A stretch of 64,000 nt of DNA. It comes from Chlorokybus atmophyticus. Lineage: Eukaryota; Plantae; Mesostigma and Chlorokybus algae. Both the position numbers and the translations under genes were made by a program. The first letter of the stretch is position 1; every line of letters begins with the position of its first letter. Positions 20,406 to 53,171 of this stretch are shown in pieces. The notes under the pieces were generated by a model. The model was not told where the DNA came from, did not search any database, and saw only the letters and a list, made by a program, of their open reading frames with translations. The stretch is taken from assembly GCA_009103225.1 (NCBI GenBank), contig RHPI01000797.1:681064-745063 (forward strand). Reading direction: 5' to 3'.

Positions 20406-21560
20406 ATGGCTAGAGTGTTTAATCTCGTAGAGGATGACACTAGCAGCACCAACACATCATTGTCATTTGGTGGGAGGCCAGGAACATTGTCGTTAAGGGA
20501 GTTTAATGTGAAGTTCAAGGCTGAGTATTTGCAATGGGAGACACGAGACCGATCATGAATAGAGGAGAAGACATTCCGACTTATCTCATGATACTTGAAG
20601 CACGAGGCATACACCGTTTCAAACGGTGCTCGTAAGTTAAGGGCAAACGTCACCGAAAGGGAGCTTGCAGCAGCTGGCACAGTGGAGGAACGCGTGTTAA
20701 GGTCGGGAGGAGCGCCGGCATCGACAACATCAGCTATGGAGAATATCTACAAGAGGTTGAAGGAAGTATTCAAGCCCATGACAGCTGAAAAGATCAAGGA
20801 GCTGATTCTATTTCGGAGGAGAGAGGGCGAGACACCCAAGATAATGTACATGAGGATGTACCAACTGGTAAGGACACGGGGTACTCAATCTTGAAGGACA
20901 AGGCAGCCGCGATCATCTATGTGGAGCAGCTGGAGCGACACCTATTAAAGGAGGCGAAGATTGCTATGGCGGGACAAGGATTGTTGAAGGAGTACTCGTT
21001 GCAACATGCGTTTGAGATGGCGGAAGCGGTGCAGCACGCGGTGGAGTATTAGAGGACTATCCTAGCTCTGAACACAGGGGAGACCAGAAACAAGGACATG
21101 AAGTAACCACTGACGATCACGGTGAGGGTGGTGATGGCGATGACGACACCAACGGGGCGGAGCTGCTACACGTGCGGTGCAGCCGACCACATTCAACGCG
21201 ATTGTCCGAGGAGGGGCAGCAGCTCAAGGGAGGCTCAAGTTGATCGGTGTGGACACTGCGGGAAGACAGGCCACATGATGGATGAGTGTTGGAGCAAGCA
21301 TCCGGAGCTGAGACCAAGTGCGGGACGAAGACGAGCGGGGCGGATGCCGATGCAGCAGGTGATGATGGCGCGAGGGAGTGCCGCGGACACGACGCCGACG
21401 ATGGAGGCAGTCACGACCAGCAACGAGGCTTCGGCGGAGGCCGCGGTGTTGCGCCACGCAGTGAAGGAGTTGAAGGCGGCTTTGGAGCAGCTGCAGACGC
21501 GGATGCAAGGCATGCCATTCGAGTACGAAGCTTACTTGGTGTGGCTAACACGGCGCGCAG
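20406..21560 (+). mobile_element. Degenerate retrotransposon gag with two CCHC zinc knuckles
   Basis: CYTCGAADHIQRDC and CGHCGKTGHMMDEC. The upstream frame from ATG 20406 (FGGRPGTLSLREFNVKFK...) is broken by in-frame TGA codons and a frameshift near 20880. No pol or LTR pair recognised. Confidence 0.75.
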
Positions 21561-23111
21561 CTGACGCGGTTGGCGAGCTCGTGCCCGACAAGGGGGGTGA
21601 CTGCAACACGCGCGAGGAGCTTGTTCGGACCAGCACGGAGGTGTTGAAGGTTGAGGAAAAAGTGCAGGTGTGTCATGTGAAGACCATAACTACCCCACCG
21701 TGTTGGTCATGCATGCACTTCCAGTGGCAGATGCAATCACCTGCACAACGGCCTTTGATCAGCGGCCCGATCCTTGGCGCGGCAGCAACAGCGGCAGCAG
21801 ACTCAACGGACTCCCCCTTCTCCTCCGCCCACGTCACCGCCTCCACCCACAACTGCGTCGCACATCCGGCTGCGACTGTGTTGTTAGGGTGTGCGCCCAT
21901 TGGCGCGCAGCATGCATGCGCACTGCACGCCGCACTTCCTTTCGCAATGCCATCACTGCGTCGTGTGCGTCACGTGTGATGCATGGTGTGAACATGCATG
22001 TTGTGAACAGCCTCGTACTTATCCTGTACACAGCCTCGTGCTTATTCTGTACATTGTCTGCAAACCATTCATGCTGGCTCAGCAGCATACCCCTTCTATA
22101 CAATGCCGAGTGCAATTGCCACGCATAGTACCAGGCACGGCATGCAAGCATGCATTGCGCCAGTGCTCGAGCCAAAGATGTAACAGAAGGCAACTTACGA
22201 GGCTAGCCTCGCGCAATGGCATTGACAACTATGTGCACAAAGGCATAAGCACCCAACCCCACCACCCAACCCCACCAGCAGCACCTAACTGCCACCAACC
22301 TCTGACTGCCAACGCCACCACTACCACCCTGCACTGTGCGGTGCAGTGCTGACGTTGGCACTGCACCGCAAGGATTGGGGTAGAGTACCGGCCAAGGAAG
22401 CAGCATGAGCTGCAGAGCGGAGAGTGGCGGGAGAGAGGGAGAGCAGGAGGGAGTCGTCGTGTTTGCTGTGGACTTGCTTGCCGTTAACACCAGCGACTAA
22501 CAGCAGCCCATGTGGGCATGTGCATGCATGTCTAACGGGGAAGGCTAGTTGGTGTAGAGTAGCGTAGTAGAATAGCCCGGTGGCAACAACGGTGAGATGT
22601 ATACTAATGTGAGCGACATGCTAGAGTGATATGCTTATTGCATGCGTGTGCACAACAGCGCGTCATATATATCCTGTACACTTCAAGCCAGGTCCCGAGT
22701 TCCCGAGTTTGGTTTGTGCATGCTTATGGATTGTGAGAGAACACAAGTGCAAGGGTAATTGTCAGCACATCTAACTTGCGGTAGCCCAAGTTTTGCACCA
22801 TTCTTGCTCAAATACTGTGTCCTTGTACTTGTGTTGGTGTGCGACACACTACCAAGCATGTCTGGTTGCGTGTATGCGTATGTGCTAGCATCATTGCACC
22901 ACTTGCTTTCGCACACAACCACTTATCCAGCGACTCCACCAGGTTACTTTACCCTCCAGTCTTATCAACAGCCTTGCATTTTTGGTGTGCCGGTAAGGTC
23001 GTGGCAGCAGCCTTGTTGATGCAGGTGCCATTACGCCTCAGTGCTGATTTGAGCTGGCTTGAGGCACGAGGCGCATGCATGGGACAGGCCATGAACATGC
23101 GTATGCCTTGG

Positions 23112-24880
23112 TCAGGCTCCAGGACGCTGTAATCGCTGGCGCTCCAACTCCAGCTGTGACAACACCGTTGTCAGAAGCAATGGAAGTAACAATGCAGCAT
23201 GTGAACATAGTTGAACGAACTGCTGACCAGCCAAAGGAAAGCGTTCTGGCCGCACCACACAATCATCCACCAACGCATAGTTGCGATGAGCAAAGGCACA
23301 TCAAGCAACATGTCAACCGTTCCTCTGTGCAACTAATGCTCTTTTGCAAGCACTTGCTGCATGCAAACAAGCGCGCAAAATGCGACTGAAGAAGGCTACA
23401 ACCCAGCTCTACATCTGTTCAAATCAACGTTCAGAAACACTGCACTCAAGCGTTGGTGTTTATGAAGACTGGTCCAACTCAAGCAGCCACGTGCTGGTTG
23501 CTTGATAGATAGAGAACTTGCTAACACCTGCTCGAGAAGAATGATCCAAACCAAGACCCATGCATCGCAACGGGCAGTTTGTGGTGTGACAGACCAATGA
23601 ATACATGCTAGCTGCTGCTGCTTCTGCATATTCATTCCCACTTACCACTTTTCGCACACGCGCCAGAGTGCCGGACGGCCCTCCAGAGCACGACTCGGCT
23701 GTGTACGGGCTCTGAATGCGCACCTCGTCCATGACCACTATGGTGGTCTGCTCCCAACGCACTGGCAGACTACCACCACACGCAACAAACCTCAGCCGGC
23801 ATGCATGCGCACAACTAGGGACATGACACACACATACGCGTGCGCGCGCATGCAGGCACTCTCCAAGTTATCCAACAACGCAAGAAAGCAAGATCTTGCT
23901 GTTGGTTGCACTTACGTCTTTGACAATGCGTCAAAAACCTCTTGCGCTTCTGACGTTACATTGACACCAAAACGCTCCGCCTCCACCTCTGCTTGCCTGC
24001 AAGTAAGGTACAGCATCCTCAGCATCACTAGGGCCAATCAAATGCTCCAACACAAGAATATAAGCCGCAGTCACTCCATGCAAGGCTTCAAGACTTGCAT
24101 GAACTTCATTTACACAGACTGTTGGTTTGCGCCTAGTCATATTTATCATGCGTTGCAAACTCTCTTGCTAGCTAGGCATGACGTGCAAACAAACCAACAT
24201 GATACGTATCGATGGTACATATTGCTGTTTATGCAAATATTATATTAAGATACGCACCTCACAGCAGCTTTTTCCCGCTGACGCAACCTGTTTATGTCCA
24301 TAGCAGGGACCCGCAAGTTGACGGGCTCCACTGGCGCGGACAGCATGGTCACCTCCTTAATGAAGTTCGCCTTGAGTATGCGCATGTTTTTTGTGCCGGG
24401 CTTGCTGCCTGCATCCTGTGCTGTGGCAGTTAAGGGCATACACGCACAACGGCGCTGAAGGGCTTGTGCTGGACAGTGGAGCTTGCAAGAGAGAGACAGC
24501 AGCAACTCAACTGCAACCCGTTTAGCCTGAAAACAGTCTGGTATTCCTCTTGCGCAGCATCAGCCCCATCAATGCATCTTGTATACTGCAACACGAAGTG
24601 TGTGTGTTCTAGACGAGTGCGCCAAGCTACAAGCTACAAGTGGAACTTGCCACTACTGACGTCAGATATGACAAGCAGAAAACATGGCTGGCAAGCATGT
24701 GCATGATCTTAATGAGCGTAGGGCACAAAAACGGATCTACTGTAAAGGGCGGATATGAAGCACAAGGCAGTTGGTGGACTTGTCGAAGGTGAAGACTTCC
24801 CCCTGGATGTCGTCGCCCAGGGTGGTCTTGACGGCCACCCTGCAGCCCACCATCCAGTCTCCTCCAGCTCCAGCCTCCAT
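23112..24880 (-). CDS. LSM12: LSM12 homolog (Lsm domain + anticodon-binding AD domain), 5 exons
   Basis: MVGCRVAVKTTLGDDIQGEVFTFDKSTNCLVL|QDAGSKPGTKNMRILKANFIKEV..PAMDINRLRQREKAAVR|QAEVEAERFGVNVTSEAQEVFDALSKT|LPVRWEQTTIVVMDEVRIQSPY..LARVRKV|LELERQRLQRPGA*. Confidence 0.92.
24418..24756 (-). other. U12-type (minor spliceosome) AT-AC intron, LSM12 intron 1, 339 nt
   Basis: 5' end |ATATCCGC; branch CCTTAAC ending 11 nt before the 3' splice site; 3' end CAC|. Only this junction restores VLQDAG in frame. Confidence 0.88.
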
Positions 24881-25432: not shown

Positions 25433-28400
25433 ATGGCGTCCGCCTCCGTGATCTCGCAGTTCTTCATTCTTTCACCGCGTGGCGACACCATCATCTCCCG
25501 AGACTGTAAGCAAGCTGCACTGTTCACATCTTTCAAGCTTGTAATGGAATAGCAAACCTTGACGCTGCTTTCTTTTTATCCAGAAAGGCTATAGTATAAT
25601 TCGCGCAAAAGCCATGCACAGCATCATGGAAATGGACACTGTTGTCTTCGTCTGCTCAGTCATTAGTGCTGTCAGGACTTCATGCGTCACAGTGATCATT
25701 CAGTTTTGATTTGCGATAGGCTGTTTGGTTGATGGGCATTGCTGTGTCAACACTTTGGGTTCATCTGCTGTATTCAAGGATGCAACTGTGCCAATGATAC
25801 TGCATGAGACTGTGCCTTGAATTTGTTGCAAACTGGGTGAGTGTCTGTGCATTGTTGGCGATCGCAGGTCATGTTTGGTTACTCTGATCATGACGACACA
25901 ACTATGCTGTTGTGCTTTTGCTAATAGCTCAAGTGGTGCATCCGCTTGGCAATTGTTGTATCATCCTTCCTCACCCAACTCAGTACTTTTACTGCATGCA
26001 TAGCAACTATCATCCCCCACAACAGATAGAGGGGACATCCCGCGCTCAAGCTCCGAAGTCTTTTTCCGCAAAGTCAAGTTTTGGCACGCTGACACCGGCG
26101 AAGAAGCCCCACCCGTCTTTGTAAGCGTCACTTTGCATGCATTCACGTAGCTGTCAGTGCATGCATGTCTCTCTGTGTGTGCACTCGCATGTGGGTGTTT
26201 GCAAGCGTACTCTGTACACATGTGTGCGCACAACGCGTGCGTACATGTCTTTGTGTTGATGTGCGCGCATGCACATGTGCGTACGTCAACTCCAAGTGCC
26301 TGTGTACCCAGCGGATACACAGGTGCCTGTGTGTACGCTCGTAGACAAGCACGTGTATGTTGACTCGTTGTTAAGTCGCCTTGTAAGTCTTTTATCCTTT
26401 TCATGAGCAGATTGTGGATGGCGTGCACTACCTGCACGTGAAGTTGTCCAACTTGTTGCTCGCGGCCACAACGCGGGCCAACGTGTCTCCGTCGCTGATT
26501 CTGGAGCTGCTCAACCGCATGGCTGGTGTCATCAAAGACTACTGCGGGGTCCTCTCCGAAGACGCCATCCGCAACAACTTCGTGCTGGTGTACGAGCTTC
26601 TTGACGAGATCATCGTGAGTGAGTTTTACCACTTGCATGGCAGTGTCTTGTTCATCTTGCAGCAACTCTGACAGCGACTAGGACTTGTGCTGTAATGTTC
26701 GCACAATCTATCCTAATCATCTAGTTGGGGATTGCAAGTGAGGGCGTGTGTGTATGGCAGTCGCTGCACACAATGCAAAGGGTTATATTAGGCTGGTCAG
26801 TGTATGTTGTGGAACATGGCTGTTCGTATCATATGATGGGTTGTTTGTGATTAGACGAGGTGACGCTATCCATTGCTAACTATTCACTGCTGACTGATGA
26901 GAAATTATAGCAAGCAGTGCTGTATGTTTGATGTGGGTATGTGTGCCGCAGGATTTTGGGTACCCGCAGACGACTTCAACAGAGGCGCTCAAGGCATACG
27001 TGTTCAACGAGCCCGTGCCAGCAGAGCCCCCTCCTAAGCTGCCCGCCGCTGCGGCAGGCATATTCAATGTACAGCTGGCTTTTGTGTATCACCGAATGAA
27101 AACACTTCTTGCGTGCATTCTTACTGGACACTTTCGGCCCTTTTCTAATTTTTATCCTGTTTGTCAGCAATTGAAAAACAGAGCGCCGGTGACGGCCGTG
27201 ACCAAGTCGGTCATCGCCAACGAGCCTTCGGGGAAGAAGCGGGAGGAGATCTTTGTCGATGTCATCGAGAGACTTTCCATCACATTCAACTCTTCAGTAC
27301 GGACACTTGCAAACCTCATGTGTGCATATATGTACTACAAACCTTGTGAGTATGTCACCAAGCCCTCTGTCCATGCAGGGCTACATTATGACATCGGAAG
27401 TGGACGGGATGATACAGATGAAGAGCTATCTCTCCGACAACCCTGAAGTCAGGATCGCTTTGAACGACGACCTCGTGGTTGGGAAGTCATCGCGAGGTTA
27501 GAGTTGTTTTCTTTCCGGCAGCACAACCTGCTTGACACAAGCACACGTAGCCAACACATGTGCGGTGGTTGCTTGGCTCCTGCTTTGCCCAATTGCTCTG
27601 TTATTAACATATTGCGCCATCTAAGGGCGTCCAGGTACTACATAATGTAGTGGCCAAGTACTCAAGTTGAGTGCCTAGTAAAGTTGGCTTACACAGTTTA
27701 TGTTGTGGAAGTGCTTGTTGTCAACTCCCACTTGCAGAGTCTATGTGACCAATTAGTAAGCGTGCAGGTGCTCAGGTTCTCACCTAAGTCAGTGTAGGGT
27801 ACAGGAGTTACTGAACATCAACATAGTATATGTGTAATTCAGTGTGTTGATGAGTACGCAACAGGATAGAGCTCTAGCCCAACCAACGTTATTGTGTGGA
27901 CAGGGCCTGCGTGGAGTTCGGCTGGAGGGGTTGTGGCGCTTGACGACTGCAATTTTCATGAAAGCGTGCGTCTGGATAGCTTTGAAACCGAACGAATTAT
28001 CGCTCTGGTATGCCTCAACTGCCCACAGTGGCCCCCTGCTCTGTGAGTAGCAGATGGCGTTCTGCTGATTGCATATAATGCTTGCTTTGCATCAGTACCC
28101 ACCCGATGGAGAGTTTGCCGTAATGAACTACCGCATCACGCAAGAGGTGAAGCCGCCGTTTAGGATATACCCTCATATAACCGAGGCGGGCGACTTCAAG
28201 GTACAGGAATGTAGTTTCGTTTGTCTTTGGTGGTGCGCGTTGACTTGGTAGCGCAGCATTCAGCTCACATTGCGCTGTTCGCCTCAGTTTGATGTGGTGA
28301 TCACCCTGCAAGCAGACTTTCCCTCCGCACACGCAGCTGCTGGCGTGATTGTGCGCATACCCATGCCCAAGACCACAACAAGGTGGATTAAGATGGCAAT

Positions 28401-48955: not shown

Positions 48956-53171
<4,216 letters not shown>

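Follow-up and report, generated by a model that had tools for sequence, protein, structure and literature searches.

A probable AT-AC minor-spliceosome intron with an atypical 5' splice site in the LSM12 gene of Chlorokybus

Results

The LSM12 gene and its first intron

The first intron of LSM12 in Chlorokybus, a streptophyte of the class Chlorokybophyceae, is very probably an AT-AC intron that is removed by the minor spliceosome. The initial annotation of this DNA had proposed an AT-AC minor-spliceosome intron in the gene, and that reading is supported by the position of the junction on a profile of homologous proteins and by an orthologous AT-AC intron in Sphagnum. From these comparisons, we consider it highly likely that the intron is of the U12 type and descends from the streptophyte common ancestor or an earlier one.

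The window, i.e., the whole 64-kb stretch of Chlorokybus DNA that was analysed, carries LSM12 on its minus strand. Pfam and profile searches were run exon by exon, while the full-length searches used the public Chlorokybus LSM12 model (P0001; jgi/Chlat1 Chrsp45S09069; 176 aa), which carries H at residue 42. Exon 1 alone matches the LSM12-type LSM domain (PF21166, LSM12_LSM; 1.9e-10, 40.7 bits with a cut-off of 29.5), and the C-terminal AD (anticodon-binding) domain was matched exon-wise in exons 3 and 4 (Table 1). In a word search with the stop-free ORF that surrounds exon 4, P0001 was the sole protein returned, at 100% identity. The ORF of exon 1 translates from the ATG at 24880 to MEAGAGGDWMVGCRVAVKTTLGDDIQGEVFTFDKSTNCLVL and, if read on, continues with HIRPLQ and a stop. 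The five-exon map is consistent with tblastn of P0001 against the window, the frame is intact in all five exons, and the protein shares 55-59% identity with plant LSM12 across its whole length.

A full-length word search of the protein collection returned the public model alone, in a one-member cluster, and thus no transcript-derived copy of Chlorokybus LSM12; a search of the same collection with the exon 2 ORF gave no shorter Chlorokybus LSM12 fragments. There is no Chlorokybus contig among the 17 loci of our metagenome scan.

Table 1. Features of the LSM12 gene in the Chlorokybus window
Feature	Position	Strand	Description and basis
Exon 1, coding part	24757..24880	-	Starts with ATG (24880); 41 codons and the C that opens the Q codon; Pfam, profile, tblastn
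Intron 1	24418..24756	-	339 nt, phase 1, AT-AC, proposed U12-type; homologue profile and Sphagnum locus L012
Intron 1, 5' splice site ATATCCGCCC	24747..24756	-	U12 core ATATCC, followed by G (+7) and C (+8), both atypical
Intron 1, branch-site motif CCCTTAAC	24429..24436	-	Putative branch A (24430), 12 nt upstream of the final base of the intron
Intron 1, 3' terminal dinucleotide AC	24418..24419	-	Sequence ...GCAC; frame listing
Exon 2	24258..24417	-	Opens with AG (end of the Q codon), continues DAGSKPGTKNMRILKANFIKEV...AAV and 2 further bases; profile from position 45, tblastn
Intron 2	23997..24257	-	Ordinary GT-AG, GTGCGT...GCAG; sequence, tblastn
Exon 3	23916..23996	-	Start of AD domain; PF09793 5e-4, tblastn
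Intron 3	23770..23915	-	Ordinary GT-AG, GTAAGT...GTAG; sequence, tblastn
Exon 4	23646..23769	-	AD domain, PF09793 1.2e-11; 100% identical to P0001
Intron 4	23154..23645	-	Ordinary GT-AG, GTAAGT...ACAG; sequence, tblastn
Exon 5, coding part	23112..23153	-	LELERQRLQRPGA plus TGA stop; sequence, P0001, tblastn

The surroundings of the gene are as follows. On the plus strand, approximately 1.1 kb past the LSM12 stop codon, a 285-aa ORF (21122-21979) contains a CCHC zinc knuckle (PF00098, 7e-06) and is probably a retroelement gag. On the other side, a divergent gene (25435-26120, plus strand) lies approximately 550 bp from the LSM12 start, with exons reading MASASVISQFFILSPRGDTIISRD and ...YRGDIPRSSSEVFFRKVKFWHADTGEEAPPVF; Pfam gave no match for these two short exons, which by eye we take to resemble the N terminus of an adaptor-complex mu subunit. 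Farther away, positions 49730-51486 form an unbroken run of 1757 G (TRF period 1, 100% matches; the composition profile gives GC 0.89) that has the look of an artefact of sequencing or assembly, not of a biological feature. Within the gene, a permissive Rfam scan returned snoU109, an H/ACA snoRNA, in intron 2 (24117-24204, minus strand); at 24.8 bits versus a gathering threshold of 43 and an E value of 0.5, we took this hit as chance.

Frame and homology at the intron 1 junction

All GT, GC, and AT donors were tabulated with their phases, as were all AG and AC acceptors, and the two exon ends were treated separately. Because the frame of exon 2 is open for 48 codons upstream, many donor/acceptor pairs are in frame on paper. 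With the AT-AC pair 24756/24418, the splice product would read ...GTGCTTC joined to AGGATGCAGG, in which C and AG form CAG (Q), giving LVL-Q-DAG (NCLVL-Q-DAGSK). The initial annotation had also claimed that the nearby GTAGAT donor causes a frameshift and that the GTGCTT donor deletes V-L-Q. The listing agrees on both counts: GTAGAT (24740) has no in-frame AG adjoining exon 2, and GTGCTT (24763) is in frame with the AG at 24416, with a product that lacks V-L-Q. Two further in-frame junctions, both GC-AG, use the donors 24768 and 24750; they were rejected, as their products misfit the homologue profile.

A homologue search with P0001 found 162 proteins, of which 120 were listed; the alignment and all counts given here are from those 120. 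Each of the 120 carries the LSM12 LSM domain and/or the AD domain, and the named ones are streptophytes. At residue 42, 103/120 have Q, with a clean x-x-Q in 93, while residue 40 is V or I in 106/120 and residue 41 is L or I in 105/120 of the listed homologues. For the profile, we used 30 well-modelled homologues, with the Chlorokybus protein excluded, and searched the ORFs of exon 1 and exon 2 separately. The exon 1 ORF aligned to profile positions 6-44, ending on L41 and with high confidence up to that residue, and the exon 2 frame aligned from position 45, which is Q. The two exons accordingly abut at 44|45 with a gap of 0 and no spare residue. Since the codon for the conserved Q at position 45 is made by joining C to AG, the terminal AC is required. 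Compared in terms of their predicted products, AT-AC is the sole junction that leaves both exons contiguous on the homologue profile.

Splice signals of intron 1

On the minus strand, exon 1 ends ...TGC CTT GTG CTT C at 24757, and exon 2 starts AG GAT GCA at 24417. These exon ends, the ATATCC at the start of the intron, the AC at its end, and a CCTTAAC branch motif near the 3' end are all present in the sequence as the initial annotation had read them, and so are G and C in place of TY at positions +7 and +8. The donor core ATATCC occupies the first six intron positions (24756-24751). The G and C that follow depart at both positions from the T and T/C of the consensus ATATCCTY (also ATATCCTT), where TY is a consensus preference and no absolute requirement of U12-type introns. 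U12 donors with one departure have been accepted in rice (GTATCCATCA), human UFD1 (GTATCTTTTT), and mouse Smyd2 (ATAACCTTTC) (PMC7367187, Table 1); two neighbouring departures, as in Chlorokybus, are less usual.

The branch-site motif CCCTTAAC agrees with the consensus TCCTTRAY at seven of eight positions and is the only CCTTRAY motif able to pair up with the ATATCC donor of intron 1. Its distance of 12 nt from the intron end falls inside the usual range of 10-15 nt, and the 3' end of the intron reads ...CCCTTAACTGCCACAGCAC. Rfam at gathering thresholds gave no hit of any family within the 64-kb window, and thus no minor snRNA gene.

The motifs alone are no rarer than expected by chance in 64 kb, and their weight lies in their exact placement. 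ATATCC occurs 13 times in the window with 12.65 expected, and simulated windows each contain approximately 3.5 complete ATATCC...CCTTRAY...AC candidates when introns of up to 3 kb are allowed. As estimated from the window's own frequencies, the probability of ATATCC lying exactly where LSM12 homology stops is approximately 1e-4, and that of CCTTRAY lying 10-15 nt before homology resumes is approximately 1.4e-3; the terminal AC lowers the value further. Together, an estimate from the motif frequencies of the window puts the coincidence of motif placement at the break in LSM12 homology at roughly 1e-7 or less.

An orthologous intron in Sphagnum

One of the metagenome loci, L012, is 96-97% identical to the LSM12 protein of Sphagnum magellanicum. 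It encodes residues 1-41 at 340-462 and residues 42-176 contiguously at 1374-1778, and it therefore represents a transcript from which the downstream introns have been removed and in which intron 1 alone is retained. Exon 1 ends ...GTT ATT C, exon 2 starts AA GAA GGC, and a Q codon, CAA, is divided between them. The 911-nt intron (464-1374) opens with ATATCTTTCT and terminates in AC, with a branch motif, TTCCTTGAC, the A of which lies 13 nt from the 3' end. The lone retention of this intron fits the known slower and less efficient removal of minor introns (PMC4615840).

The Sphagnum intron is the one orthologous intron that was read as DNA, and it matches Chlorokybus intron 1 in gene, position, phase 1 within the Q codon, and AT-AC ends; the comparison of intron positions with plant LSM12 that had been suggested at the outset thus places the two introns at the same site and in the same phase. 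The branch motifs are of the TCCTTRAC type in both and lie 12 nt (Chlorokybus) and 13 nt (Sphagnum) from the 3' end. The two introns differ in the donor, which is ATATCCGC in Chlorokybus (G at +7 and C at +8) and ATATCTTT in Sphagnum, and in size (339 nt versus 911 nt).

The metagenome scan returned other LSM12 loci. L013 (226-1343) is a plant LSM12 transcript with 61% identity to P0011 over the first 124 residues. It is spliced at the position of intron 1 (…CTC GTC ATC CAG GAG GGC), but its residues 122 and 123 stand 587 nt apart, and another, downstream intron is apparently retained there. L003 (4001-4498), L004, L006, and L008 are intronless LSM12 loci on metagenome contigs of 6-28 kb, with residues 9-174 contiguous and 47% identity; these probably derive from small-celled eukaryotes in which intron 1 was lost.

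Alternative junctions and a decaying intron

We weighed several other readings of intron 1. The first is a U2-type GT-AG intron from GTGCTT (24763) to the AG at 24417-24416, with the product ...KSTNCL|DAGSK..., in which case ATATCC and CCTTAAC would be coincidence or relics. This pair is in frame, cryptic U2-type sites are used upon failure of minor splicing (PMC4615840), and up to seven public plant models have a deletion at the junction. These models are predictions and not transcripts, however, and in at least two of them (P0103 and P0114) far more of the protein is missing, so that they may be incomplete. The product would lose V40, L41, and Q42, which are conserved (V or I in 106, L or I in 105, and Q in 103 of the 120 listed homologues), and the exon 1 ORF fits the profile with high confidence right up to L41. 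Moreover, GTGCTT lacks the G at +5 that all five ordinary donors read in the region have (a small sample), and the Sphagnum orthologue has AT-AC at the same position. We consider a GT-AG intron very unlikely.

The second reading keeps the ATATCC donor and joins it to the AG at 24422-24421 as a U12-type AT-AG intron, whether predominantly or as an alternative 3' site; it would join ...CTTC to CACAGGAT and add one P (NCLVL-P-QDAGSK). The pair (24756/24421) is in frame, and U12-type AT-AG introns are known, a published tally having 11 human examples and 1 from Arabidopsis (PMC1557818, Table 2). The spacing from the branch A to this AG is 9 nt, which is less than the usual 10-15 nt, whereas AC lies at 12 nt. 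The profile leaves no room between L and Q, none of the 93 clean homologues has an extra residue there, and the orthologous Sphagnum intron terminates in AC, all of which make this AG highly improbable as the 3' splice site.

Third, a former U12 intron could be decaying, such that inefficient splicing yields mostly truncated product or the gene is an incipient pseudogene. Two adjacent departures from the donor consensus would suit such a state, as would the stop that ends translation six codons into the retained intron. On the other side, the five exons have an intact frame with 55-59% identity to plant LSM12; the ATATCC core, branch motif, 12-nt spacing, and terminal AC are all intact; and accepted U12 introns include some whose donor departs from the consensus at one position (PMC7367187, Table 1). 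We give decay little credence and retain the functional U12-type AT-AC intron as the preferred reading.

Public gene models at the intron 1 junction

In the 120 listed homologues, the junction is clean in 93 and disturbed in 27. The disturbed models comprise 12 with a read-through of H-I-L/F, 3 with a single H (Chlorokybus, Escallonia, and Cinchona), 5 with other insertions, and 7 with deletions; they include P0023, P0026, P0028, P0032, P0061, P0063, P0064, P0067, P0076, P0083, P0099, P0108, P0111, and P0115. H-I-L/F after the last residue of exon 1, found in 12 land-plant models, is what C|ATATC(C/T)T encodes. Because the third residue is L or F in 12/12 of these read-throughs, all 12 imply T at +7. 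Eleven of them, mostly from angiosperms, read H-I-L and imply the donor ATATCCT, whereas Chlorokybus has G at +7. The insert in the Sphagnum compactum model, HIFLSDLIGS, is identical in every letter to what the beginning of the L012 intron encodes, and the insertions in the models are therefore intron read-through. The read-through peptides suggest that intron 1 of angiosperm LSM12 is AT-AC as well.

Gene predictors do not cope with AT-AC introns, and the public plant LSM12 models are consequently broken at this junction in 27/120 cases. The initial annotation had anticipated that standard predictors would mis-annotate the intron, and they did so in the Chlorokybus model, by way of H42 and an AT-AG junction; it is one of the 27 disturbed models among the 120 listed plant homologues. 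Judged against the homologue alignment, the public Chlorokybus model is wrong at residue 42, with H for Q and an impossible AT-AG junction. That this model could be correct, with its intron bounded by AT (24754) and AG (24416), has next to no probability: it is the deposited model, and tblastn places it at 24880-24755 and 24415-24257, but an ATCCGC...AG intron suits neither spliceosome and is cut 2 nt inside ATATCC, H in this column is confined to visibly mis-predicted models, and the same one-residue artefact is repeated in the Escallonia and Cinchona models. Because the mRNA encoding H42 differs in sequence from the AT-AC mRNA, ambiguous read alignment cannot be the origin of the artefact. 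An H-I-L tripeptide after the end of an exon provides a cheap flag for annotation errors at AT-AC introns.

Discussion

Minor splicing, in which U11 and U12 recognize the intron, U6atac takes over the donor, and the 3' site is set by distance, is established biology. For Chlorokybus LSM12, we infer that intron 1 is removed along this route, and any effect of the odd donor is inferred likewise. The U11/U12 di-snRNP would jointly bind the donor, ATATCC, and the branch site, CCCTTAAC; U6atac would then displace U11 from the donor, and the 3' site would be chosen by distance, with AC located 12 nt past the branch A. Splicing would join ...CTT C to AG GAT..., giving NCLVL-Q-DAGSK. Owing to its G and C at +7 and +8, the donor is expected to form two fewer A-U pairs with both U11 and U6atac; with these pairs lost, splicing may be less efficient than with a consensus donor, an effect that the near-consensus branch site may offset. 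Unspliced LSM12 RNA would encode a 47-residue stub, with HIRPLQ as its six extra codons. The G and C at +7 and +8 may serve as a natural test of how much loss of pairing with U11 and U6atac can be tolerated given a strong branch site.

LSM12 is already known as a minor-intron gene in fly and vertebrates. In Drosophila, intron 1 of the four introns of CG15735/Lsm12a is a U12-type GT-AG intron, and the human orthologue also has a U12-type intron (PMC2831892, Table 2); retention of Lsm12a intron 1 is increased in a fly minor-splicing mutant (PMC12084885), and RT-PCR in a minor-splicing mutant showed that the fly LSM12 intron is handled by minor splicing. The animal and Chlorokybus introns are alike in gene family, in being the first of four introns, and in their proven (fly) or probable (Chlorokybus) removal by the minor spliceosome, and they differ in subtype, which is GT-AG in animals and AT-AC in Chlorokybus.

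Among streptophyte algae, Chara braunii has 166 minor introns and Klebsormidium nitens 110 (PMC10639083), showing that the minor system reaches into these algae, so that the Chlorokybus intron is expected. Unlike Chara and Klebsormidium, Chlorokybus falls within the earliest-branching streptophyte group, and it is not mentioned in the accessible parts of the text and supplement of that survey. We found no literature that pairs Chlorokybus with the minor spliceosome and no plant list in the literature that names LSM12. Because Chlorokybus is a streptophyte, a minor spliceosome is expected, and the lineage constraint drawn from the intron in the initial annotation, away from Chlamydomonas-type algae, fits. 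The LSM12 minor intron of Chlorokybus is thus an expected inheritance, common to moss and, by protein signatures, to other land plants. What is mildly new is the G and C at +7 and +8 of the donor and the one-residue error in the public model.

The biological gain is small, namely one more minor intron in the earliest-branching streptophyte group. It fits a minor spliceosome that was kept toward land plants and lost in core chlorophytes, and it gives the LSM12 minor intron of animals a counterpart in the green lineage. Tentatively, we see a real but somewhat less than even chance that plants and animals received LSM12 intron 1 as a single minor intron from their last common ancestor, and that it has since changed subtype and tolerated drift of the donor in separate lineages (ATATCCGC in Chlorokybus, ATATCT in Sphagnum). 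If so, its persistence in the gene for a partner of ataxin-2 would hint that the dosage of LSM12 is set by slow minor splicing.
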